Below, piece after piece: positions 1-22,491 of a stretch of DNA of 64,000 nucleotides (positions within the stretch are counted from its first letter, which is position 1; the number at the start of each line of letters is the position of its first letter). Below the pieces are notes generated by a model. That model worked only from the letters and a program-made list of their open reading frames with translations. It was not told the origin of the DNA and ran no database searches. Both the position numbers and the translations under genes were made by a program. This DNA is from Oculina patagonica (taxonomy: Eukaryota), in contig NC_135762.1 of NCBI RefSeq assembly GCF_052425735.1, forward strand, positions 33,480,001-33,544,000, written 5' to 3'.

Positions 1-489
1 GATACGATACTTGCTTCCATAAACTTCTGCCAGCTTCTTTTCCGCGTCAACTCCTGAGGTTTTTTTGTCACCAGCGTTTGAACGGATTTTGCATAAATCC
101 TCGGACTGTATACCTTCAAGAAACATGTTGCTGCGCTTTTCTACCGGCAGAAAAAGGTCCTCGAAAAGTTTGTAGACGTCGTAAGCGTTCGTATCCTGCA
201 GAGTATCTCCTGCAAACTTGACCACCATCCTTGAGACAAGCGCCCGGGTGACGTTGTTTACGAGAAAGTTGTTGGCATGGCCGCTCACCGTCAAGTTGAA
301 CACAAGAGCCAGGGAGCCTGGCACGAGAACGACGCCTTCTTCAAGCTTTGGCACAGCAACTCTCAGAATTTCTTCTGGAGACGCTTTATTCGGGTTAAAT
401 GTAACGCGATGTCGCACTCTGTCTGCCTTGAGCGCGTTTGGAGTTTTCTCTTCGAACGTTGGTTGGTGTCTTTCGCTCACGACAGCCAT
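1..489 (-). CDS. Probable major capsid protein (double jelly-roll), N-terminal 163 aa; runs off the left edge and is missing from the ORF track
   Basis: My translation from ATG at 489: MAVVSERHQPTFEEKTPNALKADRVRHRVTFNPNKASPEEILRVAVPKLEEGVVLVPGSLALVFNLTVSGHANNFLVNNVTRALVSRMVVKFAGDTLQDTNAYDVYKLFEDLF..., open to base 1. The beta-strand pattern resembles the first strands of Polinton-like MCPs (pattern recognition only, no search run). Confidence 0.65.
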   Translation of the reverse strand, partial: MAVVSERHQPTFEEKTPNALKADRVRHRVTFNPNKASPEEILRVAVPKLEEGVVLVPGSLALVFNLTVSGHANNFLVNNVTRALVSRMVVKFAGDTLQDTNAYDVYKLFEDLFLPVEKRSNMFLEGIQSEDLCKIRSNAGDKKTSGVDAEKKLAEVYGSKYRI

Positions 490-528
490 TGTATATTTAA
501 ATTAAAAAATGTATTTATTTAATATAAC

Positions 529-1721
529 ATGGCGGCAGAAGGTGGCTTTGGTGACAGAGATCCTCTTTTGGAACATACAGACGACCGTGACGACCGTAAT
601 GACAACGATGACAGCGATACAACAGGCCCATTCCAACCTGGAGGGGCATCAACGCCCGGACCTAGTGAAGGAATACCTGGGAGAAGAACCACAATGAATA
701 GGCCGGACGAAACAACAACGATGTTTCCTGAAATCCCCGACGATAGTGCGACAACAACCTTCACTGCTTCGAGTTATCTTGACAAAGAGTTTCCATCAGC
801 TGACAAATCAAAGATTAAATACAAAATAGATGGAAATGGAAGGCTGCAAGTCGGGTTAATTAAACCAGGTAAGCCTTATTATAATTTAACAACCAAAATT
901 CAAGGCAAGGAAGAATACCAGATAAATATAAGACTTCCCAAAGAAGTTTTAAAAGCCCTTGGTCCAAGTCGTCGATTAACTCTTGAAAATGAAATAAGAG
1001 GTCTTTCAGAAGGCATCAATAACAACAAAAAAACAGCAGAAGATAACAATGAAAGCCCGGAGGAAAGAAAAAAGCTAAAGAAAGAGCAAAACTACAAATT
1101 GAAAGGCGCACTGATCTACAGAAAGAATTAGATCGGTTGAAAAAAGTAGAGTACGAGCCTGTGATTGGGGTAACAATACCTTTACAAGAATTCCAGCAAC
1201 ACGAAACAGAAAGGCAAGAAAAGGAAGAGGAAATACAACAAGAGAGACAAGAACAAGAAAATATTGCAAACGACGAAAACAGGCCACAAGCGGAAAGACA
1301 ACAAGCTCGCGAAAGAGTTGATAACTTGAATCAAGAAATTAATGAAATAGAAAATGAAAGAGAAGAAGAGATCGAAAGATTGTCTTTAACAGACAAATTA
1401 AGAGAAAAGGTAAAAGCGATTTTCAAAAAATATGGCTTCACCGTCACAGCAGTTTTGCTTGCCGTTGGCACGACTATTGGCGTAATTCTGAGTTCTCTCT
1501 CAAACGGTTTAAAAGGTTTAGCAAAAGGTGTTGGTGACGGTCTTCAGACACTTGGCAAAAAAATTGCAAGTATTCTGCCGGGCCTCCTTGGCTCGATCGC
1601 CAGTTTTGTGTTTCGAACGGCCGGCCAGGTGATCAGCTTCCTCGGCAAGAATGCTTGGCTTTTGATTGTCGGTGTTGTTATCTTTCTTATCGAGCGAGTT
1701 ACAAAACGAAGCGAGCGCTAA
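529..1721 (+). CDS. Viral coiled-coil protein with C-terminal amphipathic and transmembrane helices (~397 aa), split by a -1 frameshift at 1068-1074
   Basis: ORFs 529-1131 and 1137-1721 join seamlessly (..EERKK/AKERAKLQIERRTDLQKELDRLKKVEYE..) if one A is added to the A6 run. Acidic N-terminus, Q/E coiled coil, hydrophobic C-terminus (FTVTAVLLAVGTTIGVIL...WLLIVGVVIFLI). Confidence 0.7.
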
Positions 1722-1768
1722 GCGCTAGAGGGAAAACCCGAAGGGTTTCCGGTGCCCCTTGGACACCC

Positions 1769-3418
1769 TCAAAGAGCTCGGCTGACTGCAAACGCAACAA
1801 TAACGGCACCAGCAATAAGGTAGGTTTTGTTTTTTTCGTGTGCTGTATCTTCAGTGTCTGGCTTCTGCTTTTCGTCTGTTTTTGTCACAGTACCCGCTGA
1901 AGGCGTATGTGGCGCCGGCTCTTTTTTTGCAGCTTTGTGAATCGGGTTTGAAGGATGACTTGTTGGTCTATTAACTTTTGATGGCCCACCGCTCATACTT
2001 GTTGCGCCCACTTTTTTTGTAGAGGTATTAACATCAAGATTAACCCCTAATTTCATCCCAACAACAGCCTGCTTAAGCTGGTTATTGTAGCCAACAACGC
2101 TTTCTGTGTTTATCACCATACGAGCGGGCATCAGCCAGGCACCTGGGCAGACGGCAAGGTTAAGCTGAACCTTAGCCTCATCGATTGCGAGTTGGTATCT
2201 TTGGACCGACTTTGCCAGATCAGGTTGCCTTATAGCGTCTTCAACCAACACGAGGAACTCACTTTGAGCCTCCTTTGCGCGGCCGCCTGTGCCAAGTATG
2301 CTACTTCGAACGTTCACCTGCGAACCGAGAATACAGTAAACAAAAGCCTCTATCGACTGGTTTACTCTCGACAAACCTGCCTGAGTCAGCCCTTCCGTGC
2401 CTTTTGGACAAAACCAGTCTGCCTGTGCATATGCAGCGTCGTCTGGCTCGATGTATTGAATCAAGTTACCTTTGCTTGCAGTTCCACCTTCATCCGAAAA
2501 TTTATCGTAATCGGGGTATTTTGCCCCAGAATTTTTCGGACCAATATTTGAGATCCAGATATAAACGTCACCCAGTCCGTGGTTCGCGCCTCTTGTGAAA
2601 CGAAAATCGCTTGACGGGTCGACACCGAACTCAGCGCATATTCTTTTGTAAGAAGCCACGTCGTACTTGTTGTCAAACTGGCTAAACGTTGGGTCGCCAG
2701 GCAAGGCGCTTACGCTCTGAATCCCCCCCATCTGAAACAATATTCGCCTTATCGTGAAATAAACGTGAAAAAGGTAAAAATTTCGCACAATCGGTGGCAA
2801 GCTAAGAGATGAGTGTTCTTCATCGAAAATTTCTCGGCTTACCCCACTGCCTGTTGTCGCACACCAAACAGCAAAGTTAAGTTGCTGAGGCCAGTAGCCC
2901 ATATTTTGGCTAGCAAGCCACCTTTTTGACTCTTTTCCTGATGTATGCTTCAGTTTTGTTTTTTGAAAAATCTCTCTTAATTTCGTTGTGAAATATTGGT
3001 CTGGTGTGACGTAGATGTTGATTTGGCTGTTAAATATTTTTTTCAAACTCGGTGCGGCTTCGTGAAATCCAACCGCGGGAATTGGCAAAGATGAGCCTTT
3101 TGCGCCGCTTGGTGACAGCTGTTGTGGAAAACCGCCTGAAATTTGATTCACCCCCAGTGCTTTTTTCATCTCTGGGCTCCAATATTTGCTGTCAGAGCCA
3201 AAAACATTTATCAAATGGCCTTGCCCTGCCTTGTAATAAATGTCTGCCGTTGCTGTGTGGTTGTACGCGAACTCAACCTGTGCAACAAATTTTGTTCGGT
3301 CAGCGTTTGGATATTTTGCAAGAAAAGGTTTCCATGCATTGTCTTTTGCCGCTTCAGAAATTTTAGTTGCTTCTGGGGTTTTCATCCACTTCATAAAATC
3401 TCTTGTTTTCGCATCCAT
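1769..3418 (-). CDS. Viral protein of unknown function, 549 aa, C-terminal membrane anchor
   Basis: Long intronless ORF with motifs WPQQLNFAVWCATTG and FHVYFTIRRIL; tail YLIAGAVIVAFAVSRAL. Confidence 0.8.
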   Translation of the reverse strand: MDAKTRDFMKWMKTPEATKISEAAKDNAWKPFLAKYPNADRTKFVAQVEFAYNHTATADIYYKAGQGHLINVFGSDSKYWSPEMKKALGVNQISGGFPQQLSPSGAKGSSLPIPAVGFHEAAPSLKKIFNSQINIYVTPDQYFTTKLREIFQKTKLKHTSGKESKRWLASQNMGYWPQQLNFAVWCATTGSGVSREIFDEEHSSLSLPPIVRNFYLFHVYFTIRRILFQMGGIQSVSALPGDPTFSQFDNKYDVASYKRICAEFGVDPSSDFRFTRGANHGLGDVYIWISNIGPKNSGAKYPDYDKFSDEGGTASKGNLIQYIEPDDAAYAQADWFCPKGTEGLTQAGLSRVNQSIEAFVYCILGSQVNVRSSILGTGGRAKEAQSEFLVLVEDAIRQPDLAKSVQRYQLAIDEAKVQLNLAVCPGAWLMPARMVINTESVVGYNNQLKQAVVGMKLGVNLDVNTSTKKVGATSMSGGPSKVNRPTSHPSNPIHKAAKKEPAPHTPSAGTVTKTDEKQKPDTEDTAHEKNKTYLIAGAVIVAFAVSRAL

Positions 3419-3464
3419 GGTCCTCTTTTATATTAAACATTTTTTATTTTTATTTAATATAAAG

Positions 3465-4160
3465 ATGGTTGTGCTCACTGTCACCACAACAGAAAATCCT
3501 CACACTGTGAATTTCGATTATCCTATTCCAAAACCGAGCTATATCCGGCTTTTAAGTTGTTCTCTTTACAACAGCTGGAATAGTTTAGAAAAGGATGGAA
3601 TAGTTTTTTATAAACAAGTGAACAAGGAAGAGAAGGCGCGTTATATACGGCAAGGAAACTACTCACTCGATGACATTGGGAGTATTTTTGAAAAAGGATT
3701 TCCAGAGAAAAACATGTTTTCTGTAACAAAAGGCATTGCAGGTCGTTCATTGATAATAAAAGCAAAAGAGCCCAATTTAAAAACTTTTGGACTGAATGGA
3801 AGTCTTATTAAGTTCTTTAATTTGCCTGGGTTTGAGAATTACGCAAGTATTGAAAAGGAATATTTTGAAACAATTGAGGTAAATAATGTTTCAAATCCTA
3901 AAAATTACTTCATCAACTGTGACCTTATCGACAAGCAACAAAGCTTGCTAAATGGTAAGCCATCAAGCCTTTTAGCGTTTTTTGACATACGTGGAAAACC
4001 GTATGAAAAAGTTTATTACCAAAATACACATTTTAACGTCTTGCGCGACGTTTCTGCTGAAGAAAATGTATCATCTCTGACTCTTTCGATTAGAGATGAG
4101 AATGGAAAGCCATTCGATTTTAACGGCTCAAATCTTACATATGAGTTGGAATTGAATTAA
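3465..4160 (+). CDS. Probable minor capsid protein (penton, single jelly-roll), 231 aa
   Basis: True ATG at 3465, after an AT-rich spacer. The C-terminal pattern YFINCDLID..LLNGKPSSLLAFFD...LTLSIRDENGKPFDFNG..LTYELEL is typical of Polinton-type pentons. Confidence 0.72.
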   Translation: MVVLTVTTTENPHTVNFDYPIPKPSYIRLLSCSLYNSWNSLEKDGIVFYKQVNKEEKARYIRQGNYSLDDIGSIFEKGFPEKNMFSVTKGIAGRSLIIKAKEPNLKTFGLNGSLIKFFNLPGFENYASIEKEYFETIEVNNVSNPKNYFINCDLIDKQQSLLNGKPSSLLAFFDIRGKPYEKVYYQNTHFNVLRDVSAEENVSSLTLSIRDENGKPFDFNGSNLTYELELN

Positions 4161-4196
4161 ATTAAATACAAAAATAACTTTTATGTATACGAGACC

Positions 4197-4856
4197 ATGT
4201 CATCTGCTAATGTTCTCCCGAGTGCCCCTGCTTATGGTGATCGCGAAGAAACACAACTTTATCCAAGCCTCCCAACAAATGCCGAGAATTTTCGGCTGAC
4301 TGAAATAAGTAAAATTGAAAAAGAAATATCCGCTGAAGCTGAGCATTACAGGCTTGTGTTAAAAAAATATAAAAAAGTCCGGAAAGTTATTCACTATTCC
4401 GTGGTCTGTCTTGGCGCCGTGACGGCAGCTCTGTCTTCTGGAGCTGTTGCAACTTCACTTACTGGTGTTGGAATTGTTATCGGCGTGCCTGTTGCAGCAG
4501 TAGCAGGTATATCTGGCGCAGCTTCCACTGGCCTGTCAGTTATCAACAAAAAGCTTGAACGTAAAGTTAATAAGCACTCAAGAATCCTCGCTCTGGCTGT
4601 TGCAAAACATGACTCGATAAACAGCTCTGTCTCACAAGCTCTGAATGATAATCTTGTTTCTGACAAAGAGTTTCAACTGATCTTACGAGAAATGCAGAAA
4701 TATCGTCAACTTAAAGAGACTTTACGTTCAAGCTTTGCACACAAACAAACAAATTCACAGCCAGACATCGAAAAAATACGACAAGAGATCATGAAAGCAG
4801 AAAGACAAAAAATGAAAAAAAAACTTCTCGAAAGCACCACCGACATTTCGAAATAA
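4197..4856 (+). CDS. Viral membrane-active protein, 219 aa (helix / Gly-Ala-rich hydrophobic hairpin / helix) with N-terminal PSAP and LYPSL motifs
   Basis: Central hydrophobic segment VVCLGAVTAALSSGAVATSLTGVGIVIGVPVAAVAGISGAASTGL is flanked by basic coiled coils. The layout is like small membrane proteins reported from animal Polinton-like viruses (from memory, unverified). Confidence 0.75.
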   Translation: MSSANVLPSAPAYGDREETQLYPSLPTNAENFRLTEISKIEKEISAEAEHYRLVLKKYKKVRKVIHYSVVCLGAVTAALSSGAVATSLTGVGIVIGVPVAAVAGISGAASTGLSVINKKLERKVNKHSRILALAVAKHDSINSSVSQALNDNLVSDKEFQLILREMQKYRQLKETLRSSFAHKQTNSQPDIEKIRQEIMKAERQKMKKKLLESTTDISK

Positions 4857-5416
4857 AATTTCAGTCCAATAGAACATTTTTTCATTTAATGAAAGAATGA
4901 TTGTCTGCGCTCATCTTGTTGTTTACTTTGTGATGGAAGCATTGTCGTTCGAGTTGCAAAAAAATGTTCGAGACATAACCCGCGATGTTGTTAATTGCCT
5001 GAACGAGGCAAAATAAAATGTTACAGCGCACTTAAAGTCACTTTCAGCCGAGTCGAAAGGATTAAATCTGAGTGTCAAAAAATACAATTAAGTTGAAGCG
5101 AACAGCGAGAAATTGCGTGACCCACAGCGGCATGCAAATTTTTTTTGTGTTTGCGTGCGTGGGCGTACAAAGTCGGGGTATTACCCGAATGATATTTTTA
5201 GACTTTTGTAAGTTGTTTTCATTCCTGTGTGCTTAAAATCTGAGTTCTAAGCACTCAGGAATGTAAAATCTATTGTTTTACACGTGCACAACTATTGTTC
5301 TTTTGATTTAATGCACGTGACGGCCAATTGTGAGTCATTGTCACTAAAAATAGCTTAATGATGTCATTTTCTTTACTCTGTATATAAATCAAGCTAACAC
5401 CTGGATATCATAAAGA

Positions 5417-5569
5417 ATGACGAGCCAAACGCCAACAGAACGTGTTTTACTTCACAATCCTCGAGTTTATCAATTTTTGGAAGAAGTGGCAACACAAACA
5501 GTTACTCCACAAGAGAAACGACAGATAGAATACCAAAGAATCTTTATTGCAAGAAAAAAAAAAGCCTGA
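5417..5569 (+). CDS. Small hypothetical viral ORF (50 aa; may be longer, since it ends just after an A10 run)
   Basis: ATG at 5417 preceded by TATATAAA about 30 bp upstream; MTSQTPTERVLLHNPRVYQFLEEV... Confidence 0.35.
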   Translation: MTSQTPTERVLLHNPRVYQFLEEVATQTVTPQEKRQIEYQRIFIARKKKA

Positions 5570-5644
5570 AAAAGATCAACAACATCGAGGCAGCAATACG
5601 CGGAAAACTTAATTTATGCACTCACCGGAGCGTGCAAGCTTTGT

Positions 5645-5839
5645 TTAGCTTGTTAAAACGTTTGCGACAACACTGCTGTCTAATTTTTTTAATTTTTCAA
5701 TCAGCTCGTCTGTTAAAAAGATTGTTATTTGTTTTTCATTTTCCTTAGTTTTTTTGTATGTTGTAAAAGCTTTTCCACGAGATCTTTTCAAGTTTTTCTT
5801 TACAGACAAGTTAATTTCTCCAGTTCTCCCTCTTCCCAT
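5645..5839 (-). CDS. Small basic viral protein, possible ribbon-helix-helix DNA binder (64 aa)
   Basis: K/R-rich N-terminus followed by KQITIFLTDELIEKLKKL (strand-helix pattern). Confidence 0.35.
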   Translation of the reverse strand: MGRGRTGEINLSVKKNLKRSRGKAFTTYKKTKENEKQITIFLTDELIEKLKKLDSSVVANVLTS

Positions 5840-6030
5840 CTTCGTTTACTCAATAAGAGCATTTGTTCAATAGGAATTGTTTCTGGCACAGCAATTAAAG
5901 GTTGGTTGTAATTTAATACAATGGCGCCATACAACGATTGGTACACTGTCGGGTCCGGCGAATCTGCTTCAGGAAGTTAGGAATGTGAAAGCCACTCACA
6001 TTTTCCTCCTTTCACACAAAAGGGCTGGCC

Positions 6031-6209
6031 TTGCGGGCCCCACACACATGAGAGTTTTGGCATTGCGACCCCCACACACATGAGAGTTACCGGTTGTGGA
6101 CACAACTTGCAAAAAATAGCGAGGCGAGACTGGCGAGCCAGCGAGCCAGGCGAGCCCGAGCGGTTTTTTTTGCAAGTTGTGCCACAACCGGTAACTCTCA
6201 TGTGTGTGG
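6031..6209 (+). repeat. Terminal fold-back hairpin (6072-6209) preceded by a 32-bp-period direct repeat
   Basis: 6072-6116 is the reverse complement of 6166-6209 apart from one bulged A. TTGCG..CCCCACACACATGAGAGTT occurs at 6031-6056 and 6063-6088. Confidence 0.9.
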
Positions 6210-7345
6210 TGTAAATGCTCACGTCAATATAATGATGACCTTTTGAACGCTGGAAACTAGGCAATTATTATCGAGCTACCATACACAGGAGCGAAGACTG
6301 TTTATCATGATGTACAAATTTCGCGAATCATCACTTCCATATCAATGTAACCATTTTATGATTTTTCTAGCTGTAAGAAGAACTTAAGATCTCTGAGAGT
6401 CGTAAAAGCATGAAATTCGATTTCAGTGTATGACAAAGGCCGGGACAGTGTAATACTGCAAAGCGGCCAAACAAACGCATTTTGATTTAGTCGCGTAACT
6501 TGATTTACATTTATCCATGTACATCTTTTATTTTTGAAGGTTTTTGTTTGCACTGTAAAGAAAAAATTGGTCAAAATTCGAAATACAAAATACGAGGTAA
6601 AGTTTTCTATTTTTTAAAACAAAATAAATATTTGGTCGCATTGTGTAAATAAACGCGAGTCGCCGTCGAAATATTTTTTCTCAAAGACGTCTTGCTTTTT
6701 AAGCAAGACGAAAACACAAGTTCTTAACTGAACTGAAAACGAAGATTTATTTTCACAAAAAGCTTACAAATGTCTTAACTGGAAAATTATTACGTCCTGT
6801 TCAAGTGTTGAATAATCGTGACTTGAGAAAGAACTTTTAATTATGCGTGGGAACACGTGTCGCTAATTGGCTGTTTTTAATTGAAACTAATCGTGCGTGT
6901 TCGTACGGAGTCCGTTCTTGCAGCTGATCATTGTTTTCTACATTATAGCGAACGATTATCGATCCCGAACCATTCCCTTGGGATTGCTAACAGCTTTTTT
7001 CATATAACAAAGAGTCTAATGCGCATGCGCAAAGCGCACGCAAGCATTAGACTCAAAAAATTGTTGTTTTAGTTGCACATTGAATCTATGCGTGATTTGT
7101 GTTGATTTGTAGGTAGTCTATATAAAAGCGTTAACGTTGGAAATGATGCCATTTCACGGTGAATAATCGTAGGGTGAAGAACAATGTTTCAAACCGACAG
7201 TTTTCTGTTGTTTGTTATCTGTCAATTTCTTTAGTTCTTCTTTAAAGTGAATGAAGTGGTTAATAGTACTACTGTATGTGCTTCCTGTTCCCAGCTAGTG
7301 AAATGTTCTTGTTTTGAAATTCATTTTCTTTATCGTTCAAAACAG

Positions 7346-10300
7346 CTGACCGTCAGAACGCTTGCCCTCCCCAGTCCTGTGGTAGAGTCCATTCAATCAT
7401 GTCAGTGCGATGCAAAGGATGTTGTAGTTCGACTACAAGAATGTATGGATTTGGATCTAGTATCACTGGCTGAACCAGATCTTGAGACCGCACAAATGAT
7501 CCGCTGTGTTGCTAAAGCAGCTAAAACTGAAGACAGGCTTGATGTGGTCAAGCACTTGAGAGAGATCACACCTGCTGGCACAACTGGTAAGTTTGACAAA
7601 ATACTATGAAATGACAAGAGCAATTTTCCCATGGATAACCCGTTCTGTTTATAGTCCCTCTTTTGTACTCCATGGGTACGACCACAACCTCACAAACAGT
7701 ATTCAATCACCAATTCCTACACGACGATCATTTACCGTTTTTGAGATTGCTGTGTGGTTCAGATCCGTAAATAATACTCGTGATCATGGTCATTCACCTT
7801 GTTCAAGCTAAACTATAACTGGAGCACCTAAAAAACTGTTGAAACCCTATTTCTTTCAATTTTGTTCCATTGGTAAGCAGCTTCTGTGCTTACATATGAC
7901 TAGGTTTAAGTCAATACAGCAGTTTTTGGGCCGATACCAAACTTATCAATCAGTTTTTCAGCCGTCCTTCTCTCATCGAATTGATATGAAAATTACACCA
8001 GTTGTTGCTCTTAATTTGAAATTCAGCAAGGTGCATCTTTTTTTAAGGAAACGGATATTGCCATGACAACGATAAACAGAAAACTAGAAATCAGTAAAAC
8101 TTGAATTTTGCACGATCCAGATTTCATGTCAAGAAGCTATTACCAATACGGTAAACTACGGTGCATTGGCTATGAAAAATCTTTACGTTTAATTTTGAAT
8201 GAATCGCAAAAATCAATTTCTTTCACCAGAACAGTAGCTTTTTATATTTCTTTACGAAAAATGTTGCCTTGCTACAATTACTAACACAGATGAAATCTTA
8301 AATTTACGATCCCGTAAACGTGCCGTCTAGAAAGCGTTAAGATCCTCTTTACGAATCTATACGAACCTCTTTACACTTTCGTAAAGAACGTCTATACGCA
8401 TTAAAAACCATAGTGCATAAAGAGTGCGTAGTGAGACTCGAAACGTATCTTTACGCGTGTTGTAAAAATCGTAAAGAGATTGTTAACGAAATTTTACGGC
8501 TACTGTAAGGCGATCGAAAGTCGATCTTTACGCATTGTTAAACTTTCGTAAATGAGCAGTATTTAAAAGCCCATTGACGGCTTTGTATCTGTAGCATATC
8601 AATAAAGATAGCTTCCAAACAAGTAAACAACACAGCTTCAATATGGCTGAACAACACAACACTTTATTCGCTAAGCATCCTGGGTACATATGGTGCAATA
8701 GCCTAACACAACTTCCGGTTATGTAACAGTAGTCTAAATATATTACACTGCTTCCCCCTAAAAAGAACTAGCAATGTACTTCTACTTAAGGCATAATCTA
8801 CTGCTACAAGTCAAGTTTAATAACTGGTTTTCTAACCCTCTGAGATCTTCGCAAAACTAGTGGCGTGCTACTTTCAACTGTTGAAGATGCAATAGGATCC
8901 TCAGTTTCAGAGGAAGTTACACCTGGCTCGGAAATACTAACACTATCATCAGTAGCAATCTGATCACTTGACTCAGGCATCATGACCTCTGGTTCACTCA
9001 CATCATCTGGTACATTATCATGTGCCTTTATCATATGATCAGTGTGGACATATCTGGTTTTGTGTCCTGTCCTAACTACATACGTTCTAGGTCCACAAAC
9101 TTTAATTACAGTGCCAGGAATCCACTTATCCGTCTTAGAATTAGCCCTTGTGTTTCGTACGCGCACCCTGTCATTTCTTGTGAATGGCCTATCCCGCTTA
9201 CATTTCAGATCCTTGTACATTTTCTGTTTCTCCTGTTTATCTTCAACGACCTGTGCTAGATTAGGCTTAATTAAACTTAACCTTGTTCTTAGGCGACGCT
9301 TCACCATCAACTCAGCAGGGGTAACCCCGGTTGTACTATGAGGGGTAGTGCGGTACCTGAATAGAAAATTTGCAAGTCTATGTTTCATAGACATTCCCTT
9401 TTTACCCTCAAGCACTTGTTTGACCAATGCATCCTTAACGACTCTCACGGACCTCTCTGCTGCCCCATTGGATTGAGGGTGATAGGGTGGAACTAAGGTG
9501 TGCTTGATACCATTTTTGCGCATGAACTCAGAAAATTCAGTGGATGTAAATTGTGGTCCGTTGTCAGATACCACTTCTTCGGGTAGGCCATGAGTAGCAA
9601 AAATGAGACGGAGTTCATTGACAGTCCGTTCAGTAGTTGTAGAGGTCATATGTTGCACCTCAATCCACTTAGAGTGGCTATCAATTACAACAAGAAAGTA
9701 ATCATTACCCTTTTGACAGAAGTCAATATGAATCCTCTGGAATGGTCTGGTTGGCCACTTCCATGGGATCAGGGGTGCACTAGGTGGGGCATTTCTAACA
9801 TTTTGGCATACTGTGCAAACTCTCACTTCTTCCTCAATTTCCTGATCCATTTTTGGCCACCACATACACGTACGAGCAATTGCTTTCATACTACATATAC
9901 CAGGGTGCTCCCAGTGTAGCTGCCCCAACATCTTGGTTCTAAAGATCGGTGGAATAACGACCCTAGAACCCCAAAGAACACAATCCTGTTCACAGGACAA
10001 CTCATTCCTTCGGTTATGATATGGTTTCAGGGTCTCATCAGGACAACTCTCTGGCCAACCTGACATCACAAATTGATGTACTTTACTCAGAACAGGGTCC
10101 ACAAGTGTTGCCTTTCCTATATCCTCTGCCGTTACTGGAAAATCATCATCAATTGCACTCACACTATAAATTGCACTCTCACTTCCTACAGTGGAATTCC
10201 CATGTGGTAACCTTGAAAGTGCATCACAATTAGCGTGGTCTTCAGATCTTTTGTACTCAATCTCATAGTCATATGCTGAGAGTACTAGGGCCCACCTCTG

Positions 10301-13300
10301 CATCCGTGCTGCCGCTAGTGTTGGGATAGCAGATTTTGGACTGAGAATTGCCAACAATGGTTTGTGATCAGTAATCAAAGTAAATTTACGCCCGTATAAG
10401 AACTGATGAAATTTTTTTACACCAAAAACAATTGACAACGCTTCGCGCTCAATTTGTGCATAGTTCTTTTCACTTGAACTCAGTGTCCGAGACGCATAGG
10501 CAATTGGCCTTTCCTGGCCGTCGTCCATCACATGGCTGATGACAGCTCCGAGTCCATAACTGGACGCATCACATGCAAGTCTTAGTTCACGGTTCCCATC
10601 ATAATGCACCAAAAGTGCATCGCTGGTGAGACTTTGTTTACAAGCTTCGTATGCTTGCTGACACTCTTTTGTCCATACCCACTGGACACCTTTTTTTAGG
10701 AGCTCATGTAATGGTGCTAGTGTAGTTGCTAAATCAGGTAGAAATGGGTGGTAGTATTGGACCATACCCAAAAAGGATCTTAGCTCGCTTACATTCTGTG
10801 GTACTGGTGCTTTCTTTACAGCATCCACCTTCTCTTCAACTGGATGTAGGCCTTCAGCATCTAATTTCAGGCCTAAGTAGACAACTTCTGTCTTCAGGAA
10901 TTCGCACTTTGGCAATTTCAAATGAATGTTATATTTGTGCAGCCTTTCCAGGACCTCAGCTAGGATTTTGATATTTTCTTGCCAACTGACACCACCAATA
11001 AGAATGTCATCCTGCTTACAAACACATTTTTCTACCCCTTGCAAAATCATATCCATTTTAGCTTGGAAAATCTTAGGCGCTGATTTAACCCCATAGGGTA
11101 ATTTGGTGTAGGAATAGAGTCCTTTGTGAGTGCTTATAGTTAGGTACTCAAGGCTTTCGTTATCAACACTTAACTGCGCATATGCATGCGACAAATCAAG
11201 TTTGCTGAAAACTTTGGATCCTGAGAGGGCAGCGTACAAGTCTTGTTGGGTAGGGAGGGGATATTGTTCATCTTCTACAGCTGAGTTGATGGTTACTTTG
11301 TAGTCCCCACAAATTCTCACTGACTTGTCAGCTTTTGGTACAACTACTATTGGGCTTGCCCAGTTTGATCTTTCAGTTTTTACTATCACCCCATGCTTCT
11401 CAAGTTTATCCAACTCCTTTTCTACTTCTTCTTTCAGTGCATAGGGGACCCTTCGTGGTTTGATAAATATGGGCTTTGCACCATCTTTCATAGTGATGTG
11501 TGCTTCCAACCCTTTCATACCCTCATAGCTCTCTTCAAATAACTCACTATGTTTAGCTAAAAGATCATCAATTTGCCTTTTGGCACTAGTTGATTCACAA
11601 CTTGTTACACTGAATATTTCACCCCACTCAAGCTTCACATGTTTGAGCCAATTTCGACCCAGTAAAGTAGGCTTATTGTCATAGTTAGCTACAACCATGG
11701 GCAGTGTATACTTTTGGCCCTTGTACACGACATCACATTGCATCTCCCCACACACTGCAAGGGTTTCACCCGTATAGGTTTTCAATTCAACTTTTGATGG
11801 ATAAAGTGGGTAGTTACTGAATTTCTGAGTATACATACTCTTACTCATTATTGAGTAATCGGCAGCAGTATCTACCTCCATTGCACATGGTGAACCATTA
11901 ATGGTTGTTTCTACAGTATAACCTTTGTTGGTAGGATTATCTGTACCAACTGAGTACAAGGAATATATACCCAACTCATCATCGTCACCACACTCTTTGC
12001 GTGGTTCTAACAGAGTATGAACATTACCTTTACCCTTACTAGACTGATCTACATTTTTACTTTGGCACACCGATGCAATGTGACCGATTTTCCTACATTT
12101 ATAGCATGTTGCTGACTTAAACTTACACTTTGGTGCAGCATGCTTACCACCACATCGATAACATGAAGGTTCATTAGTGTTTACAGTCTCCAGTTTGTTC
12201 ACAGTTTCCAGTTTATTCACAATGCCTTCGCTGTCAACACTTGCACTGACAGGGCGGAATTCTTGGGTATTCTTCTCTGCCATCTCCATTGACTTTGCTA
12301 TCTGGCAAGCTTTCTCGAAGGTAAGATCTTCGGTATTCAACAGCTTATTCTGGATTTTGGGATTGTTCAATCCGCACACAAAACGGTCTCTCAGAGCTCG
12401 ATTTAAAAACTCTCCATAGTTGCAATGAATTGATAGCTTCTTCAATGCCACAATAAAGTCACTGATGGGCTCACCTGGTTTCTGGTGGCGTGTGCCGAAA
12501 TGAAAACTCTCCGCAATCTCTAATGGCGCTGGATTGTAATGCTTCTCAAGTGCCTTAACAATATCAGCAAAAGGAGTGTCTCTTGGTTTTGCTGGCACCA
12601 ACAGATTGCTCAGGGTAGAATATGCTTCAGGTCCAATCTCAGTCAGAAAAATAGCACGTTTCCTTTCTCTTACGGCGAGATTGGCATCCTCGTTTCCCTC
12701 GCCTGTTTCTTCTCGGATGTTATTCGCTAAGAAAAACATCTCCATTCTTTCAACATATGAGCGAAAAGTCTCTCTCTCTTGAACAAATTCGCCAACACGA
12801 CCGAATAGTACATTTGCCGCCATTCCGATAGGTTGCACGTGTTGAACGACTCGAAAACTTTAGCCAGCCGACTACTGTCAAAAACACACTTTTTCCTCAC
12901 ACAGAGAAAATCAAGGCTTCGTAGGGTTTCTCATGCGTCTTAGTGCATGTAGAGTGTAAGATCCTCGTCGCCAAAATGTAGCATATCAATAAAGATAGCT
13001 TCCAAACAAGTAAACAACACAGCTTCAATATGGCTGAACAACACAACACTTTATTCGCTAAGCATCCTGGGTACATATGGTGCAATAGCTTAACACAACT
13101 TCCGGTTATGTAACAGTAGTCTAAATATATTACAGTATCTTTCTGTATTCTTCGGCAATATTTGCTTTTTGGTAACCCGACTTTTATAAATGCAGGTTTC
13201 TGACAACATCTACATAACGCGCAACGCGCGCAACGTAAAAAGCCTATTCAGGACGTTTACGATATTTTACGCTTCCGTAAACTGCGATATAATTTACGCA

Positions 13301-16300: not shown

Positions 16301-19300
16301 ATTTTTGGCATGTGCAACAGGAATTCCTGCAACAGTTTGTCCCTGCGACATGTTGCACGAAGTTCAATGAGTTGAATTCCGTTCAACATGTCACAGGGAC
16401 AAAACAGCTTCAAAGATCGTGTTGCACAAGCCAAATATGTAATCAGCGATTACATATTTGTTGTTGCTACATGTCCCGCTCCACTTCCCCTCAGTGTAAA
16501 CAACACATGATTTTGTCGTTTCTACATGTTGCTGCGATGTGTCCCTGCGACATGTCCCCATGTGTGGAAACCTTAAGATTCATGCAACAAACAAACAATG
16601 TATTCTTATCCACCCAGCTCCCAGCTTTAATCTGTATTCCCTCCTTATTATTTTCTTTTAGCAATCAAAAGCAATTGAAATCACAATAATTTTGTTTCTT
16701 TGAACATTGATTTTCATTGATTGTTATCAACCATCTGTTTATCAATTGACTATGCCGGGTGGTTGATGATCAAGCAAGATTTCAAAAGAATTCAGTTTGA
16801 TTAATGTGTAAATGGGTGAATGGTATCCGGTCGTTTCGAGACAAAGTCGTTTCGAGACAAGTCGATTCAAGACACATGTAAAGTCGATTCGAGTCAAGCT
16901 CCATTACTTGAAGTCCTTTCGATATACAAAATACTATACTATATATTAAGGTAACCTATATTAATGATCAAACAAACCTTCGAAGACGCGGAATCCGGTA
17001 GTTTCGCCTACAAGTATTTTCGCCTACAGGTCGATTCGCCTACACAACCTGAGTTGTTTCGCCTACACCAAAGTCGATTCGCCTACAACAAAGCTTGCTA
17101 TGTTCCGAAAGATAGAAGAGAGGAATACCTAAATAAAGAGTTTAAAAATCTTGTCAATAATAAGCTAGGTTAAGAACAATTAAAAACCAAAAGTATTTGT
17201 TTAACGCTTAAATTTAGTCCTAGGATCGCGCACTATGTCAGCCAGAGTTACGGAACTAAAAGTTGTATTTTTTAACCATTAGGAAACAATAAGGGTCTTA
17301 GGAATATCTATTTAATAGTAGCAATCAATAGCATTTGCCACGTAAGAAATTGTAGCAAAAGTTAGTTTGAATTAAGTACAAAGAGTAAGATTAGAACTGT
17401 TGTCAAAAACTAGTAAGAGCCACTGAACTAAAATAAAAAAGTTATTTAAGTGTGAAGACGTAGTAAGCTTTATTGTAAAACCGGTTCACCCATGCATTCT
17501 CTTGAAAAGATGTTCTTGCGACTTTAAAAGCAATCAGAGTAACACATTTGTTTCATGTCTTAATGAAAAAAATTATTTTCGTAGGTAGCACCGCTAAGTT
17601 ATGCGCGATGCGAGAACATCCTTTCTCAGTCCCAGGCCTTGTGTCTTCCCCTAGTCCATACTAGTCAAACATTACGCGTGATCAGCGAGTATATAAAAAT
17701 CCCCGATCGCAACCTTAAGAAATACGCTCTACTAAAGATGAAGTCTTCAAATTTGAGAAAAAAAAAGTGTAGGCGAATCGACTTTTGTGTAGGCGAAACA
17801 ACTCAGGTCGTGTAGGCGGCGACTTCACTGTAGGCGAATCAACCTGTAGGCGAAAATACTTGTAGGCGAAACGACTGACATTCGAAGACACTTGCTCGGG
17901 CGAACATAAACCTTCGTTGTAAAAAAAAAACGAACACACAAACGAGACCGAGTTTTGGTCATGTTTATTTACAAAAGTGTTTGTCTCAATATATTTTTGA
18001 GACTTCCTCTATAACTTCAGAAAATATGTTGCCTACGATCAAGAAACACAAATCACACCACGACTGTTACCAAGAGTTACCGAGTTACAACTAGCTATGT
18101 TACAACTTAAATATCAAGATGGCCTCCGCGCAGATTTTATTTACGTCGATCGATCAAGTCGCTTCCGCGAAATATTTAAGCTTATTTTACAGAGATAACA
18201 AAAATTACCAAACTATTAAAAACAGTCATACTGAACTTTTCTTAGTTTGTCTCGAATCGACTTTACATGTGTCTTGAATTGACCTCGACTTGTCTTGAAA
18301 CGACTTGTCTCGAAACGACTTTGTCTCGAAACGACCGTAAACTGAATGAGTGTCATGAACTTCTGGGGATTCGAACAATGATGATAAGTAAAAATTATTG
18401 CTCAGCTCTAACATGTAAAGAAATAGAAAGAAAAGGTAAGAAACTATACATCGCTTAAGACATAAAAAGAGAATGCCTACTCACCTAAACATACTTTGTG
18501 TTGAATTGTTCCTCGCTGTTTCGCGCGAGCAATTCTTGTCGACTCGAAGTCATAGAATTACTTAAGGAATAGAACGATGTACGCGTCCACCACACATTCC
18601 ATCACAACCTTTTTCTTGTCCAAAGGCTTGTATTGTATGTTAGGACAAGGTTTCGATAAACTAAGCTCAACAACGACAGGAGAGAAGACTTCGCAATGGA
18701 CCGTTGAACAAGTTGTGAATCATTGTCACTTTCAAAATCAGGACAACTCGGATTAATATTAATCGGATTAATATTAATCCTAATGATTATTATAATCCGG
18801 TAATAGATTATTGTAATCCAGTAATAGATTATTATAATCCAGGTATAGATTATTATAATCTATTACTGAGGTTTGAGCCGTGCCTTAATCCATTAGGATT
18901 AATATTAATCTTATGTAAGATTAATATTAATCCGATTAATATTAATCTTAATAATAAATCTCAACAACTCAATCCTAGTCCAAAGCTTCCGAAGATTGAC
19001 ATTATTTAACGATCTTAGGCGACCTTATCAATATCTTATGCATTCTTGGACCTACGCGTACTTTGTGCGCCCTTGCAGGTCGACCGGAATCTCCCCTACT
19101 CCACTTTCATCTTCCAGCACTAAGCTAGGAATAGATACGAAGCTTGATGTAAACATACTTTATTGTTTGAAGCAGCTGAAATAGTTTTTTCGTGAACTTG
19201 ACATCATATACAATATGCTAACCATGTCAGTTCACAGATAATATTTTCATCAACAAAAGGCGCCAAGAGACGGGAGAAATTCTTGTTCATAGTTGCCATT

Positions 19301-22300
19301 GTGATATACCGACTCCGAACATAGAAACAGTTGGTGTGTTTGGGTTTGTCGCTATTTCTTCGCGGCTGGTAACGATTCCCTGTCGTTAGGTCTCTTTTTT
19401 TGTAAAAGAACATGCCCGCGGCACGGATTCGCTGACCCAGAGACGCTTGATCCTTTTCTTTTACTTCTAGGGTCAACAACATCGTCTAATCTAGCTTTAG
19501 CATATGCAAAAGTGATCGTCATGTGACGGATGTGATTAGTGACTTATGTCCTGTCAGTCCTGTGTTGTAAGTCTACAGTGTGTTTGTCATGTACATATCT
19601 GTCAGATAGTCAAATAGACATATCTGTTATCCGAACATTCACGGAATTTTATCGGGATTATAATAGAGATTAATATTAATCCGGATTATAATATTAATAA
19701 TAATCTAATCCTTCCAATTTTTTGCCGTGCCTAAATCTATTACTGGATTATAATAATCTAAAAAGAAAAAAAAGGCGCGTAAAGGTTGACTCTGCGTAAA
19801 GGAAGTTAAAGGTCCGTAAAGAACGGTACGTAAAGAATCGTAAATAATGTTAAAGACGCGTAAAGTGTTAACAGCGAAGCTGATCAAAATAACTCTAATT
19901 CTACTTAAAACGGATGATTTTTCACTTATTTCGGTATTTCTTTTCATAGAAAGTAGTGAATTAGATTGAATTATAGCCATCTAGATCTTCATCCTTTACG
20001 AACATGTAATATCCTTTACGCAGTCTTTACGAGTTCTCTGCCGTTTACGCATCTTTACGGAATGCGAACTTGTCCGTAAAGAAAAGGCCATATATTTACG
20101 AATATTTACGCAAGCGGTAAAAAATACGTAAATTCTTGTTTTCATGCTGTGTAAGACAAATTTGCAGTGTGTTAATAATCCAATCCAACTGTAATTATAT
20201 AATTATAATTACTCACTTTTGAGCGTAGTAGCCGATTGATTGCCATTCACAATAGTAAATTTTCTTTTTGATGTTATATAGTTGGGAAATTTTAAAACTT
20301 GGCCTTCCCAAAGAGTTCACGCTGTTTTGATTTGTAGAGTAGCCTTTTACACTACTGATTTGTAGAGTAACTTTTATCATCTTAGATACAAGTACCGTTT
20401 ATAGTAAGCTTTCGTTTGCAATGGAGTTTTTCATGTGCGGTCATTTCAATTTTTTTTTTCGTGTGTAAACTAGGGCCTCTGCTGGATGAGGATCTTGATG
20501 TTCGATGCATCCCTTTTCCCCAGAGAAAAGATTTAACATTCAGCCTCAGTGGTAAGTAGGAAAGTACTGCACTAGGGAAAATACACATTACCCTTTAGGG
20601 CCATAAATTTCACAATTAGCAAAACCTTAACCTTTGCCCACAAAGTACTTTGCTATATCTTTATGTGTATCAAGTGATATTTATTCCCTGTGCTTGTGCT
20701 TCAAACGTTGTGAAACGTTTTGTATACACCATAACTTGTAGTATTTATACCTAAACACCACATTGCTATGTTCACACACATTTCAGACTAAGGGAAGTTT
20801 GTGTTTGTATTTCATGTTATTTTGGGGCCAAAGCCGCACTGGTTCTTGGATAGTTTAGAACATGAGTTTTGCTATGTACATGGTTCGTACAATCTTGAAA
20901 AGGTCTTGAATTTTAGCAGTCGTCTTGAAAAGTCCTTGAATTTGGTTAAGTCCTTGAAAAGTACTTGATTTCTTCATTAGGTCTTGAAAAGTCCTTGAAA
21001 TTTAGGACTTCTTGCACGCCCTATTTCTTTTCTGATAAATTAAATGCTTTTGGTAAGAAAAATTTGTTCACAAACGACTTCTAAAATGAGAAATAACTTG
21101 CGAAAATGTCGGTATAAAACGCGAACCCCTACATGAAGCATGATTTAGATCTTTGCCTCAATTTCATGCACCAGGGCTTGCACCAGGCCTCTGATGTGGG
21201 GTTGTCCACCATGTGGTTTTGTTGGAAGGGGCAACATGGCCGATAGTGAGTAAACATTTCGCGTTGTTTTGAATTCCTTCGTTTGCAATTCAAATTAGCT
21301 ATGGTCAAATGTGTATTCAATCGTAAATGGTTAAGTGATGAAAAGTTCAGCTGGGTTAAAGAATTTAAAGGCGACAAGCACAAGGTGTGTGTTGTGTTTA
21401 CAACAAAGTGATCGACATCGAACGCCGAGAAAGCGCTTTGAGGAGCTCAAAAAGAAGAAGAAAAGGATGGAACTGGACATAGACACACTTGTCCAGTCAG
21501 CAGATGATTTGGGTGTCAAAGCCAAGAAACTGGAAAGCTCACTCTTATCACCAAGTCCAATTCCCTTAGAAAGGCAGCCAAAGAGAAGACTCTTCAACTG
21601 CAAGACGTTGAGGGCAAACTGAACAAAAAGTTAGAAACGCTAAAAACATGCTGAAACATTCTGCTGTGATAAATCATTGTGAACAATATCAAGTATTGCT
21701 GTGTCTGTACTTTGTTTCTGTACTTCTGTACTTTGTTTCTGCACTTCAGACGTATATGATAGCCGTCAAATAGCCAGTGAATGTTGTCGTTTTAAAAATG
21801 TTATAAAATGCGATCACGATGATCTCGTTAACCAAGCCTGAACAATTTAAAAGTTGTAGATGACTTAGTTGAGTGTTTAAGAAATGAAAGAGAGGACGGA
21901 GAAATTGGAGACTTTTGATTTTGTGAATAAAACTCAGTCCTTGAAAACAATTTTTTGTCCTTGAAAAGTCCTTGAATTTTGTTTGTCTGAAGTTGTACGA
22001 ACCATGTATGTAGCTAGTCATCCTCACAATTACTGTAATGTCTTGAACTTTACGTTTTGTGAAAATCCACCTTCACAACCATCGCTATATGTGTCTCAGT
22101 CATTTATTCTTTTTGTTGGTCTTCCATGATAAAGAATTTTCTGGGACTCAGGACCGTTTTTGACTTTGATCCCATAGTCATGTGAATCACTTATTGCATA
22201 CCATATTTATTGGATGCGCCACGTGATACGTTCTTGTCCGTTTGAAAAAGCTGTTCCATTTGGGATACAACAGCATAAATTTAACTTTTTTCTTTAGCTG

Positions 22301-22491
22301 GAGAAGAGTGGAAACTGCTTGCAGAGAAGCTAGGCTTTTCTCCAATCGAAATTCGCTTCCTCGACAAGAGAGTCACTAACCCAGCCGACGTTGTTCTTGC
22401 TACCTTGGGAAATCACCGCTATCTAAGTGTGGGAGAAGTCTATGATGAATTAGTCAAGTGCGAGCTTCCAGCTTTGGCTGACATAATATAA
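7346..22491 (+). CDS. Host death-domain-containing protein, last three coding exons (7346-7586, 20474-20551, 22298-22491); 5' exons not found
   Basis: AG/GT sites with consistent phase 1 give ...DVVKHLREITPAGTT G PLLDEDLDVRCIPFPQRKDLTFSLS A GEEWKLLAEKLGFSPIEIRFLDKRVTNPADVVL...VGEVYDELVKCELPALADII*. WKLLAEKLG is a death-fold signature. Confidence 0.82.
8590..8747 (-). repeat. 3' LTR
   Basis: Matches 12977-13134 with one substitution; preceded on the minus strand by the polypurine tract AGGGGGAAGCAG (8748-8759). Confidence 0.97.
8804..12823 (-). CDS. Gag-Pol polyprotein (Gag, two zinc knuckles, aspartic protease, RT, RNase H, integrase)
   Basis: First ATG at 12823 (MAANVLFGRVGEF). Motifs: LRDRFVCGL; CYRCGGKHAAPKC and CYKCRKIGHIASVC; EVDTAA; RICGDYK, LPYGVKSAP, KQDD; LACDAS, TDHKPL; HHCC, IHIDF, VSDNGPQF, SNGAAER. 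Confidence 0.97.
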   Translation of the reverse strand: MAANVLFGRVGEFVQERETFRSYVERMEMFFLANNIREETGEGNEDANLAVRERKRAIFLTEIGPEAYSTLSNLLVPAKPRDTPFADIVKALEKHYNPAPLEIAESFHFGTRHQKPGEPISDFIVALKKLSIHCNYGEFLNRALRDRFVCGLNNPKIQNKLLNTEDLTFEKACQIAKSMEMAEKNTQEFRPVSASVDSEGIVNKLETVNKLETVNTNEPSCYRCGGKHAAPKCKFKSATCYKCRKIGHIASVCQSKNVDQSSKGKGNVHTLLEPRKECGDDDELGIYSLYSVGTDNPTNKGYTVETTINGSPCAMEVDTAADYSIMSKSMYTQKFSNYPLYPSKVELKTYTGETLAVCGEMQCDVVYKGQKYTLPMVVANYDNKPTLLGRNWLKHVKLEWGEIFSVTSCESTSAKRQIDDLLAKHSELFEESYEGMKGLEAHITMKDGAKPIFIKPRRVPYALKEEVEKELDKLEKHGVIVKTERSNWASPIVVVPKADKSVRICGDYKVTINSAVEDEQYPLPTQQDLYAALSGSKVFSKLDLSHAYAQLSVDNESLEYLTISTHKGLYSYTKLPYGVKSAPKIFQAKMDMILQGVEKCVCKQDDILIGGVSWQENIKILAEVLERLHKYNIHLKLPKCEFLKTEVVYLGLKLDAEGLHPVEEKVDAVKKAPVPQNVSELRSFLGMVQYYHPFLPDLATTLAPLHELLKKGVQWVWTKECQQAYEACKQSLTSDALLVHYDGNRELRLACDASSYGLGAVISHVMDDGQERPIAYASRTLSSSEKNYAQIEREALSIVFGVKKFHQFLYGRKFTLITDHKPLLAILSPKSAIPTLAAARMQRWALVLSAYDYEIEYKRSEDHANCDALSRLPHGNSTVGSESAIYSVSAIDDDFPVTAEDIGKATLVDPVLSKVHQFVMSGWPESCPDETLKPYHNRRNELSCEQDCVLWGSRVVIPPIFRTKMLGQLHWEHPGICSMKAIARTCMWWPKMDQEIEEEVRVCTVCQNVRNAPPSAPLIPWKWPTRPFQRIHIDFCQKGNDYFLVVIDSHSKWIEVQHMTSTTTERTVNELRLIFATHGLPEEVVSDNGPQFTSTEFSEFMRKNGIKHTLVPPYHPQSNGAAERSVRVVKDALVKQVLEGKKGMSMKHRLANFLFRYRTTPHSTTGVTPAELMVKRRLRTRLSLIKPNLAQVVEDKQEKQKMYKDLKCKRDRPFTRNDRVRVRNTRANSKTDKWIPGTVIKVCGPRTYVVRTGHKTRYVHTDHMIKAHDNVPDDVSEPEVMMPESSDQIATDDSVSISEPGVTSSETEDPIASSTVESSTPLVLRRSQRVRKPVIKLDL
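12961..12973 (-). promoter_or_regulatory. Primer-binding site, tRNA-Ser(GCU) type
   Basis: TGGCGACGAGGAT lies 3 nt after the 5' LTR and is complementary to a tRNA 3' end ...AUCCUCGUCGCCA. Confidence 0.85.
12977..13134 (-). repeat. 5' LTR
   Basis: Partner of 8590-8747; followed by the PBS on the minus strand. Confidence 0.97.
13681..13990. repeat. Two abutting inverted-repeat (hairpin) units; dispersed non-autonomous repeat
   Basis: TAGTTATGCAACGCTTTC...GAAAGTGTTGTGTAACTA (13681-13841) and TTTATACCATGCCATAGAAAATAC...GTATTTTCTATGGCATGGTATAAA (13843-13990). Confidence 0.75.
14237..14930. repeat. Fold-back element with ~200-bp inverted arms and a central ~25-bp minisatellite
   Basis: CTCATGGTTTTGTCATTGCCCTTGCAT..GACTGGCCCTCTCCCATGGTAG is mirrored at 14755-14930; AACTA.C.GCAAGCAAAC units lie at 14515-14670. 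Confidence 0.7.
16104..16573. mobile_element. PIF/Harbinger-like MITE
   Basis: Ends AGGTCTCCACA / TGTGGAAACCT with TAA on both flanks; long imperfect internal inverted repeat rich in ACATGT. Confidence 0.7.
16823..18342. mobile_element. Mutator-like/fold-back non-autonomous element (outer)
   Basis: TIRs built of GTCGTTTCGAGACAA tandem units; TGAATG on both flanks. Confidence 0.7.
16990..17883. mobile_element. Mutator-like/fold-back non-autonomous element nested in the previous one
   Basis: TIRs built of TTCGCCTACA tandem units; flanking GAAGACGC / GAAGACAC (TSD, 7/8 match). Confidence 0.75.
18750..19760. repeat. Two arrays of AT-rich palindromic units (GATTAATATTAATC / GATTATTATAATC)
   Basis: Arrays at ~18750-18960 and ~19655-19760. 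Confidence 0.75.
20879..22006 (+). mobile_element. Internally deleted hAT-like transposon
   Basis: 14-bp TIR CATGGTTCGTACAA, TSD TATGTA, subterminal CTTGAAAAGTCCTTGAA repeats. Relic N-terminal zinc-finger-like coding (MVKCVFNRKWLSDEKFSWVK..., from 21301) is fused to a C-terminal coiled-coil relic. Confidence 0.8.

Follow-up and report, generated by a model that had tools for sequence, protein, structure and literature searches.

A palindrome with a CGAG-block core forms the outermost part of the terminal inverted repeats in a coral polintovirus lineage

The integrated element and its genes

The window analysed in this study was the whole stretch of 64,000 nt from Oculina patagonica (contig NC_135762.1, positions 33,480,001 to 33,544,000). 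Judged from its similarity to other loci (designated by L numbers) and its gene content, the segment from position 1 to ~6207 is the left ~6.2 kb of a ~15.8-kb integrated element of the Maverick/Polinton type (polintovirus), and the sequence to the right of its terminal palindrome was unrelated to the element. The features of this segment and its terminus were as follows.

1..6207, no strand: left ~6.2 kb of the element, the remainder lying before the window start (similarity to L001 and gene content)
1..489, − strand: 5′ part of the 416-aa gene of L001 (17970–19220), interrupted at the window start and putatively encoding the major capsid protein (L001 alignment)
529..1721, + strand: two element ORFs of 200 aa and 194 aa, the second coiled-coil and membrane-like (97% identical to L001)
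1769..3418, − strand: conserved 549-aa element protein with a hydrophobic C-terminal tail
3462..4160, + strand: conserved ORF of ~232 aa, the later part of ORF 3240–4160 (same position as the 223–232-aa genes of L005 and L032–L040)
4197..4856, + strand: 219-aa predicted membrane protein (same position as the 207–224-aa genes of L002, L005 and L032–L041)
5645..5839, − strand: small ORF of 64 aa adjoining the terminus and reading inward from the end
5840..5900, no strand: conserved subterminal block ...TTGTTCAAT...GAAAA..., common to otherwise divergent ends, between the first inward-reading gene and a variable spacer
6072..6209, + strand: terminal palindrome of 138 nt, the outermost module of the left end of the element (16 equivalents at other element ends)
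6072..6116, + strand: inner arm, starting (CC)ACACACAT, with a bulged A at 6100
6117..6165, + strand: CGAG-block core with six CGAG units and three possible tandem G.A steps, on the + strand only (zipper scoring; published NMR of CGAG blocks)
6166..6209, + strand: outer arm, ending ...CATGTGTGT(GG), where the + strand reaches the element terminus with its 3′ end
6208..6212, no strand: probable right-hand copy of a 5-bp target-site duplication (by analogy with L032+L040 and L031+L041)

Window positions 1–4251 corresponded to L001 18458–14222 at 97% identity. L001 encodes a Pox_A32-type packaging ATPase (Pfam), and its region 22022–23119 matched the rve integrase PF00665 with an E value of 2.4e-06, below the Pfam gathering score; weak rve matches were also found at the equivalent position in L005, L006, L031 and L032. 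The polymerase gene lies outside the window, in L001, and its full-length homologues (ca. 1,250–1,430 aa) carry PF03175, the protein-primed PolB domain, together with Endonuclease_7; comparison of the polymerase with solved structures returned no match. The element was identified as a Maverick/Polinton because L001 combines this ATPase, the integrase and a PF03175-type polymerase. It further resembles Mavericks/Polintons in its size (ca. 15–16 kb), terminal inverted repeats and short target-site duplication, which in Mavericks/Polintons is 5–6 bp long. Polintoviruses are abundant in the genomes of stony (scleractinian) corals (PMC11131425).

The virion module of Mavericks/Polintons comprises a packaging ATPase and jelly-roll capsid proteins; the putative capsid assignment of the 416-aa protein of L001 derives from a weak PHROG match to a major head protein. 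Searches with the 549-aa protein scored more than 2,300 homologues among 8,000 candidates, mostly from ENA assemblies, and its five best named matches were from Oculina patagonica; it had no Pfam, PDB or PHROG match, and exact look-ups of the 549-aa and 219-aa proteins of the window retrieved no record. The MGRGR... start of the 64-aa ORF was also found beside the inverted repeat in L005, L032 and L033. The TTGTTCAAT block occurred at equivalent positions in L001–L006 and L031–L041, at both ends, outside the polymerase gene or the MGRGR... ORF; at a guess, it may be a promoter shared by the two ends inside the inverted repeat.

The element was a mosaic, in which window 1–4251 resembled L001 (97%) and window 4152–5895 resembled L002 (ca. 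94%), and the last ~300 nt of the element in the window, palindrome included, was like neither. From these similarities, terminal modules appear to have been turned over or exchanged much faster than the element body. In the L001 polymerase (23147–25960, minus strand), an Endonuclease_7 domain, similar to the junction-cutting T4 endonuclease VII, was located between the N-terminal region and the polymerase core. The domain was also found in L013, L015, L017, L023, L029 and L008 and is conserved in coral and metagenomic relatives; a non-exhaustive literature search yielded no paper describing such a domain in the polymerase of a Polinton. A specific tie between this domain and the palindrome was considered and dropped, since the domain is clade-wide and is also present in metagenomic relatives that yielded no such palindrome. 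In the NCBI gene models of L001 and L003, element ORFs were fused with neighbouring host exons into chimeric ‘genes’ (e.g., one product of 568 aa that spans 6.7 kb and another of 1431 aa that includes a C2 domain), meaning that polintovirus genes in this assembly are mis-annotated as host genes.

Anatomy and folding of the palindrome

The imperfect palindrome of 138 nt at 6072–6209 consists of 44-bp arms, one bulged A and a 49-nt core. The outermost 28 nt of each arm (6072–6099 and 6182–6209) are 100% complementary, and beyond the single bulged A6100 the stem resumes as 6101–6116/6166–6181. Sequence and self-alignment therefore bore out the outer stem of the original prediction (6072–6116/6166–6209, 44 bp with one bulge). 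The stem sequence was unique among the loci compared, with no second copy of the palindrome family of the window, and an Rfam search returned only a sub-threshold hairpin-like match (MIR444, 24 bits against a gathering score of 110).

When folded as single-stranded DNA, the + strand reached −62.7 kcal/mol, compared with −26.4 ± 3.1 kcal/mol for 200 shuffles (z = −11.9), and the complementary strand reached −62.9 kcal/mol, compared with ca. −26 ± 3 kcal/mol for its shuffles (z near −12). The equal stability of the two strands (−62.7 vs. −62.9 kcal/mol) arises because the standard nearest-neighbour DNA model contains no bonus for tandem G.A pairs. The strand asymmetry of the fold therefore rests on published NMR of CGAG blocks, in which CGAG units in DNA hairpins form thermally stable, consecutively stacked blocks of C:G, sheared G:A, A:G and G:C pairs (PMC10085684).

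The 49-nt core contains six CGAG units, compared with ca. 0.12 expected from the window background (0.0024 per nt), and no other 49-nt stretch of the window held more than three on either strand. Pairing within the core was scored with our own ad hoc dynamic program for a single hairpin, which allowed a tandem G.A step only between Watson–Crick pairs (zipper score). On the + strand, the program recovered the pairing that had been predicted, with three CGAG blocks, each providing one tandem G.A step, a bulged C, a single A.G and a 4-nt tip; on the complementary strand of the core it found no CGAG/G.A block. The claim that only the + strand folds fully held in the dynamic program; the energy model does not distinguish the strands. 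As to the claim that three registered motifs are unlikely to be chance, the zipper score of the core was above that of 1000/1000 mononucleotide shuffles, but 15/1000 shuffles in which the six CGAG units were kept intact matched it. Zipping is partly automatic because so many CGAG units are present.

Next to the palindrome, a subterminal 32-nt direct repeat with 72% identity was observed at 6013–6076 (+ strand), and a second copy of the 17-mer that opens the inner arm (CC + ACACACAT...) was located at 6040–6056. A locus with a different stem family, L033, carried an independent duplication of the inner-arm start ca. 31 nt upstream (8875–8930). In both cases, the duplicated unit comprised the inner-arm start plus ca. 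10–15 nt upstream of it, repeated 31–32 nt further in. This duplication may be a footprint of slippage or of re-initiation at an internal copy of the terminal motif.

Palindromes at both ends of the element

In 366 kb of coral DNA from three assemblies, 17 palindromes of this type were identified, 12 at left and 5 at right ends of elements, and none was found away from element ends. The 17 ends were reached from the protein side, via element genes; all belong to integrated copies, and families within one assembly share ancestry. The left-terminal 248 bp of L001 and the polymerase-side-terminal 248 bp of L003 were 99.6% identical and inverted relative to the element body. L040 and L032, located on one contig, together form a complete copy. 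Its inverted repeat measures 329 bp and shows 100% identity over its whole length, including the palindrome, and the host sequence TCTAT is present in duplicate immediately outside ACACACAT...ATGTGTGT. Another assembly provided the second complete copy, L031+L041, with an inverted repeat of ~214 bp and the duplication TTTTG. Inverted repeats thus measured 214–329 bp, and in the two complete copies 5-bp target-site duplications abutted the terminal ...ATGTGTGT. A 6-bp target-site duplication was also considered and was excluded by L031+L041, which fixes its length at 5 bp.

These results demonstrate that the palindrome is the outermost 115–170 bp of each terminal inverted repeat in a coral polintovirus lineage. 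They support the original prediction that the hairpin marks the virus end (17/17 palindromes, with abutting duplications in two copies), where it is a conserved structure that looks functional. In the proposed check of the opposite end, the same structure was present, as seen in L001/L003, L040/L032 and L041/L031. A shared boundary at ~6209 had also been proposed as a check. The copies do have a common outer terminus, but because the two complete copies end so, the last base of the element in the window is probably, by analogy, 6207 ± 2 (...TGTGTGT). If the element ends at 6207, the GG at 6208–6209 is probably flanking DNA that extends the palindrome by chance.

One complete copy was truncated at one end. 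Its polymerase-side end had a full palindrome (L006 9545–9713), and its opposite end stopped ca. 44 nt into the inner arm (L005, ~7052), with no recognisable target-site duplication there. This truncation may represent deletion of an unstable palindrome or aberrant integration.

Among 24 IMG/VR metagenomic contigs of the same polymerase clade, a large palindrome upstream of the polymerase gene was found only in L023. This palindrome (4657–4840) has 45-nt arms, lies ~145 nt upstream of the polymerase start and is centred on 94 nt containing two direct repeats with small hairpins; it has neither a CGAG core nor an ACACACA end and may represent a structured terminus that evolved separately. The contig starts of L013 and L029 also had no ACACACA end. 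Since only one palindrome was found in 24 relatives, either the structure is not general in the clade or the contigs lack true ends.

Turnover of the arms and conservation of the core

Arm length ranged from ca. 45 to 84 nt across lineages and the arm sequences differed, but each palindrome was still ca. 90% or more self-complementary. Between families, inner arms were 55% identical on average, compared with 45% for shuffled arms. Covariation was counted over a 78-pair structure in an alignment (A2) of nine ends from one assembly, representing four families. Of its cells, 91.6% were paired, against 78.5% in shuffles (reached by 0/500) and 40%–52% in slid controls, and both sides had changed in 35/78 pairs, compared with 21 pairs in shuffles and 5–9 in slid controls. 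Base-pairing of the arms is therefore shown to be maintained while the sequence turns over. Mirrored double changes were also detected between near-identical copies, one in L038 compared with L034/L037 and two in L036 compared with L039. In these cases one arm could have been copied from the other, and hairpin-templated synthesis or repair fits the pattern better than copy-through.

Besides the CGAG core and an A-run/T-run at its base, the parts kept in sequence were the terminal ACACACA(T) and a short internal block; in alignment A2, the terminal 8–9 nt were invariant. A one-base bulge occupied the equivalent place in the inner arm of L001, L003 and L004, three Oculina lineages with otherwise differing stems.

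Within the central 60 nt of 15 ends, CGAG occurred 41 times on the 3′-terminal (inside-to-end) strand and once on the complement, and the orientation of the core was identical at 17/17 ends. Because the ends are inverted repeats and this orientation is constant, each terminus coincides with the 3′ end of the strand capable of G.A pairing. The sequence potential for a 3′-strand hairpin closed by sheared G:A pairs was present at every end. The register of the units was conserved as well, as had been proposed, and other lineages showed compensating changes. The paired units of L006 are GGCGACC and GGGAGCC, in which one base pair is absent on both sides relative to the commoner unit, and in L033 an A–T pair replaces the A.G of L035. 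Against shuffles that preserved the CGAG units, the zipper score was matched in 1/1000 for L002, 5/1000 for L004 and 0/1000 for L006, and the result was weak (ca. 3%) for L032 and L034; no excess over these shuffles was seen in L001 (18%) or in L031, L035 and L036, whose cores are short.

Two further suggestions of the original prediction were not supported. Flip/flop inversion is at odds with the single core orientation at all ends and with an arm asymmetry common to several lineages, and a parvoviral Rep link found no counterpart among the element genes: no Rep/HUH domain was detected in a Pfam scan of 19 ORFs or in the Pfam matches of the L005, L006, L031 and L032 genes. Hairpin-transfer replication with flip/flop is therefore disfavoured by the fixed orientation and the conserved arm asymmetries.

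Comparison with known terminal structures

A survey of coral polintoviruses considered inverted repeats of at least 100 bp only and does not mention a palindrome or hairpin (PMC11131425); unlike in that description, the outermost part of each inverted repeat here is a snap-back palindrome, and its CGAG-block centre is conserved. For this virus supergroup, our literature search found terminal palindromes reported only in a preprint of July 2026 (bioRxiv 10.64898/2026.07.28.741278). According to its available passages, endogenous virophages and polinton-like viruses of Halocafeteria contain 52-nt palindromes inside their inverted repeats, next to the target-site duplication, for which a hairpin role in replication was proposed, and these palindromes mostly accompany replication genes other than protein-primed PolB. 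Terminal palindromes adjoining the duplication are thus common to both systems, whereas the Halocafeteria hosts are protists and the coral elements have a protein-primed PolB. A conserved G.A core, covariation and fixed orientation are not mentioned in those passages. No description of a conserved, covarying, single-orientation hairpin with a CGAG-block tip at the ends of animal Mavericks/Polintons was found in our literature survey, which did not include the original Polinton description of 2006.

The nearest worked-out precedent for purine-zipped 3′-strand hairpins is the Streptomyces telomere. Its 5′ ends are capped by a terminal protein, and palindromic hairpins of the 3′ strand are closed by sheared G:A pairs; the protein that initiates terminal-protein-primed synthesis binds these 3′-overhang hairpins (PMC4513846). 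The fold of the coral ends is a prediction from their sequence. Unlike the coral ends, the Streptomyces system is bacterial, replication starts internally, the ends are ‘patched’, and several packed palindromes are present instead of one. The Streptomyces Tap/Tpg proteins are unrelated to the viral PolB of the coral element, and Pfam scans of the element ORFs returned no Tap/Tpg-type family.

In adenovirus, a protein-primed replicon, the displaced single strand self-anneals its inverted terminal repeats into a panhandle, which re-forms a duplex origin. This panhandle is a functional analogue of the coral palindrome, with the difference that adenovirus joins two distant ends, whereas the coral end could act locally. 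The hairpins of parvoviruses and the hairpin telomeres of poxviruses and asfarviruses are imperfect terminal palindromes of ca. 100–170 nt with conserved asymmetries. The repeated short motif of the coral core recalls parvoviral Rep-binding elements; unlike parvoviruses and poxviruses, however, the coral element has neither a Rep gene nor flip/flop, is dsDNA virus-like and protein-primed, and integrates with a target-site duplication. The human AUTS2 promoter contains CGAG blocks that form DNA hairpins with register shifts and stable small tip loops (PMC10085684). These blocks belong to a host promoter repeat that is not known to be linked to replication, whereas in corals the CGAG units are located at the axis of a long Watson–Crick palindrome at a virus end.

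Possible role in end replication and alternative explanations

The standard model of Maverick/Polinton replication is a sketch that relies on annealing of two distant inverted repeats, and to our knowledge neither the replication nor the end maintenance of these elements has ever been shown. Since a protein-primed polymerase initiates synthesis opposite the template's 3′ end, we propose that snap-back of the 3′-ended template strand might serve protein-primed end replication, a mechanism for which we regard the case as evenly balanced. The 3′-ended template strand would be freed as a single strand, either by displacement during strand-displacement replication or by breathing of the end, and would fold back on itself. 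Its Watson–Crick arms would restore a duplex copy of the terminal origin as a local ‘mini-panhandle’ for which the distant end is not needed. The CGAG blocks would shut the tip with G:C and sheared G:A pairs, and the resulting cap, compact and specific to one strand, could be recognised by a replication protein. The polymerase would read straight through the palindrome, and hence the orientation would never invert. Other protein-primed replicons use a sliding-back step, and the reiterated terminal dinucleotide of the coral ends would suit such a step.

The same palindrome could be read in other ways. The CGAG units might be double-stranded sites for the terminal protein, the polymerase or the integrase, with the zipper as a by-product and no need for a hairpin. 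That the core is kept in sequence and orientation while the arms are not is in line with such duplex iterons, as is the relative ease with which a zipper arises by chance given many CGAG units (18% for L001). This explanation seems unlikely, however, as it leaves the arms of 45–84 bp, which covary without sequence conservation, unaccounted for, and paired core units differ but stay matched (GGCGACC/GGGAGCC in L006; A–T in L033 vs. A.G in L035). A role in integration, in which the folded or palindromic end is recognised or synapsed by the retrovirus-like integrase and is not a replication structure, would accord with the abutting target-site duplication, the invariant terminal 8–9 nt and a reported tie between the palindromes of protist virophages/polinton-like viruses and particular integrases (bioRxiv 10.64898/2026.07.28.741278). 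The long covarying arms and the strand-specific core would nevertheless have no explanation. DDE integrases of the rve type generally need only a short duplex end, which also speaks against an integration signal, and we consider it rather improbable.

A hairpin-primed or covalently closed telomere of the parvovirus or poxvirus kind, resolved in a one-sided manner, with the polymerase's endonuclease VII-like domain as a possible resolvase, appears improbable, and covalent closure in particular is disfavoured. The position of the palindrome at the extreme end, the Endonuclease_7 domain within the polymerase and the mirrored double changes, which suggest arm-to-arm templating, point towards it, and hairpin priming has been proposed for virophage palindromes (bioRxiv 10.64898/2026.07.28.741278). 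Against it stand the single orientation at 17/17 ends with conserved arm asymmetries, the presence of a protein-primed polymerase, the fact that no Rep/HUH or protelomerase-like gene was found among the element genes, and the occurrence of the endonuclease VII-like domain in metagenomic relatives that yielded no such palindrome. A mixed scheme is similarly improbable, in which a snap-back hairpin end would be the substrate of the protein-primed polymerase and its own Endonuclease_7 domain would process or correct the hairpin or cruciform. If true, it would combine in animal polintoviruses two end-replication strategies usually thought separate, and processing by Endonuclease_7 would explain the mirrored double changes despite the single orientation. 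Finally, palindromic MITEs are common in animal genomes, and the window alone would be compatible with an unrelated foldback element/MITE or an assembly artefact beside the virus. This is extremely improbable: the palindrome belongs to the inverted repeat at either end, the entire ~15-kb element lies between the two copies of the duplication, and palindromes occupied 17/17 ends in three assemblies with no solo copy in 366 kb. These data contradict an independent MITE, which had been named as an outcome that would refute the original prediction.

For snap-back of the 3′ strand and for the general question of Polinton end replication, the conserved hairpin with its covarying arms, strand-specific tip and fixed orientation provides a concrete DNA substrate. 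It ties an animal virus-like element to the solution found at Streptomyces telomeres, i.e., purine-zipped 3′-strand hairpins. The palindrome is also a precise marker of true element ends in coral genomes, which repeat thresholds of at least 100 bp do not resolve.

Other features of the window

Several features were observed in the window to the right of the element. A Ty3/gypsy LTR retrotransposon at 8590–13134, 2.4 kb from the polintovirus end, has 158-nt LTRs that are 99% identical and a single open gag-pol ORF of 1344 aa (protease, RT, RNase H and integrase), and looks like a young insertion. Large minus-strand ORFs at 37483–42431 contain many BRCA2 repeats, with a tandem array of ~147-nt units at 38196–39222; this region seems to be a host BRCA2-like gene with an expanded BRC-repeat region. 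At 16823–18342, nested inverted repeats with arms of 40–52 nt (93%–96% complementary) are built of short tandem units and look like the ends of a non-autonomous DNA transposon.
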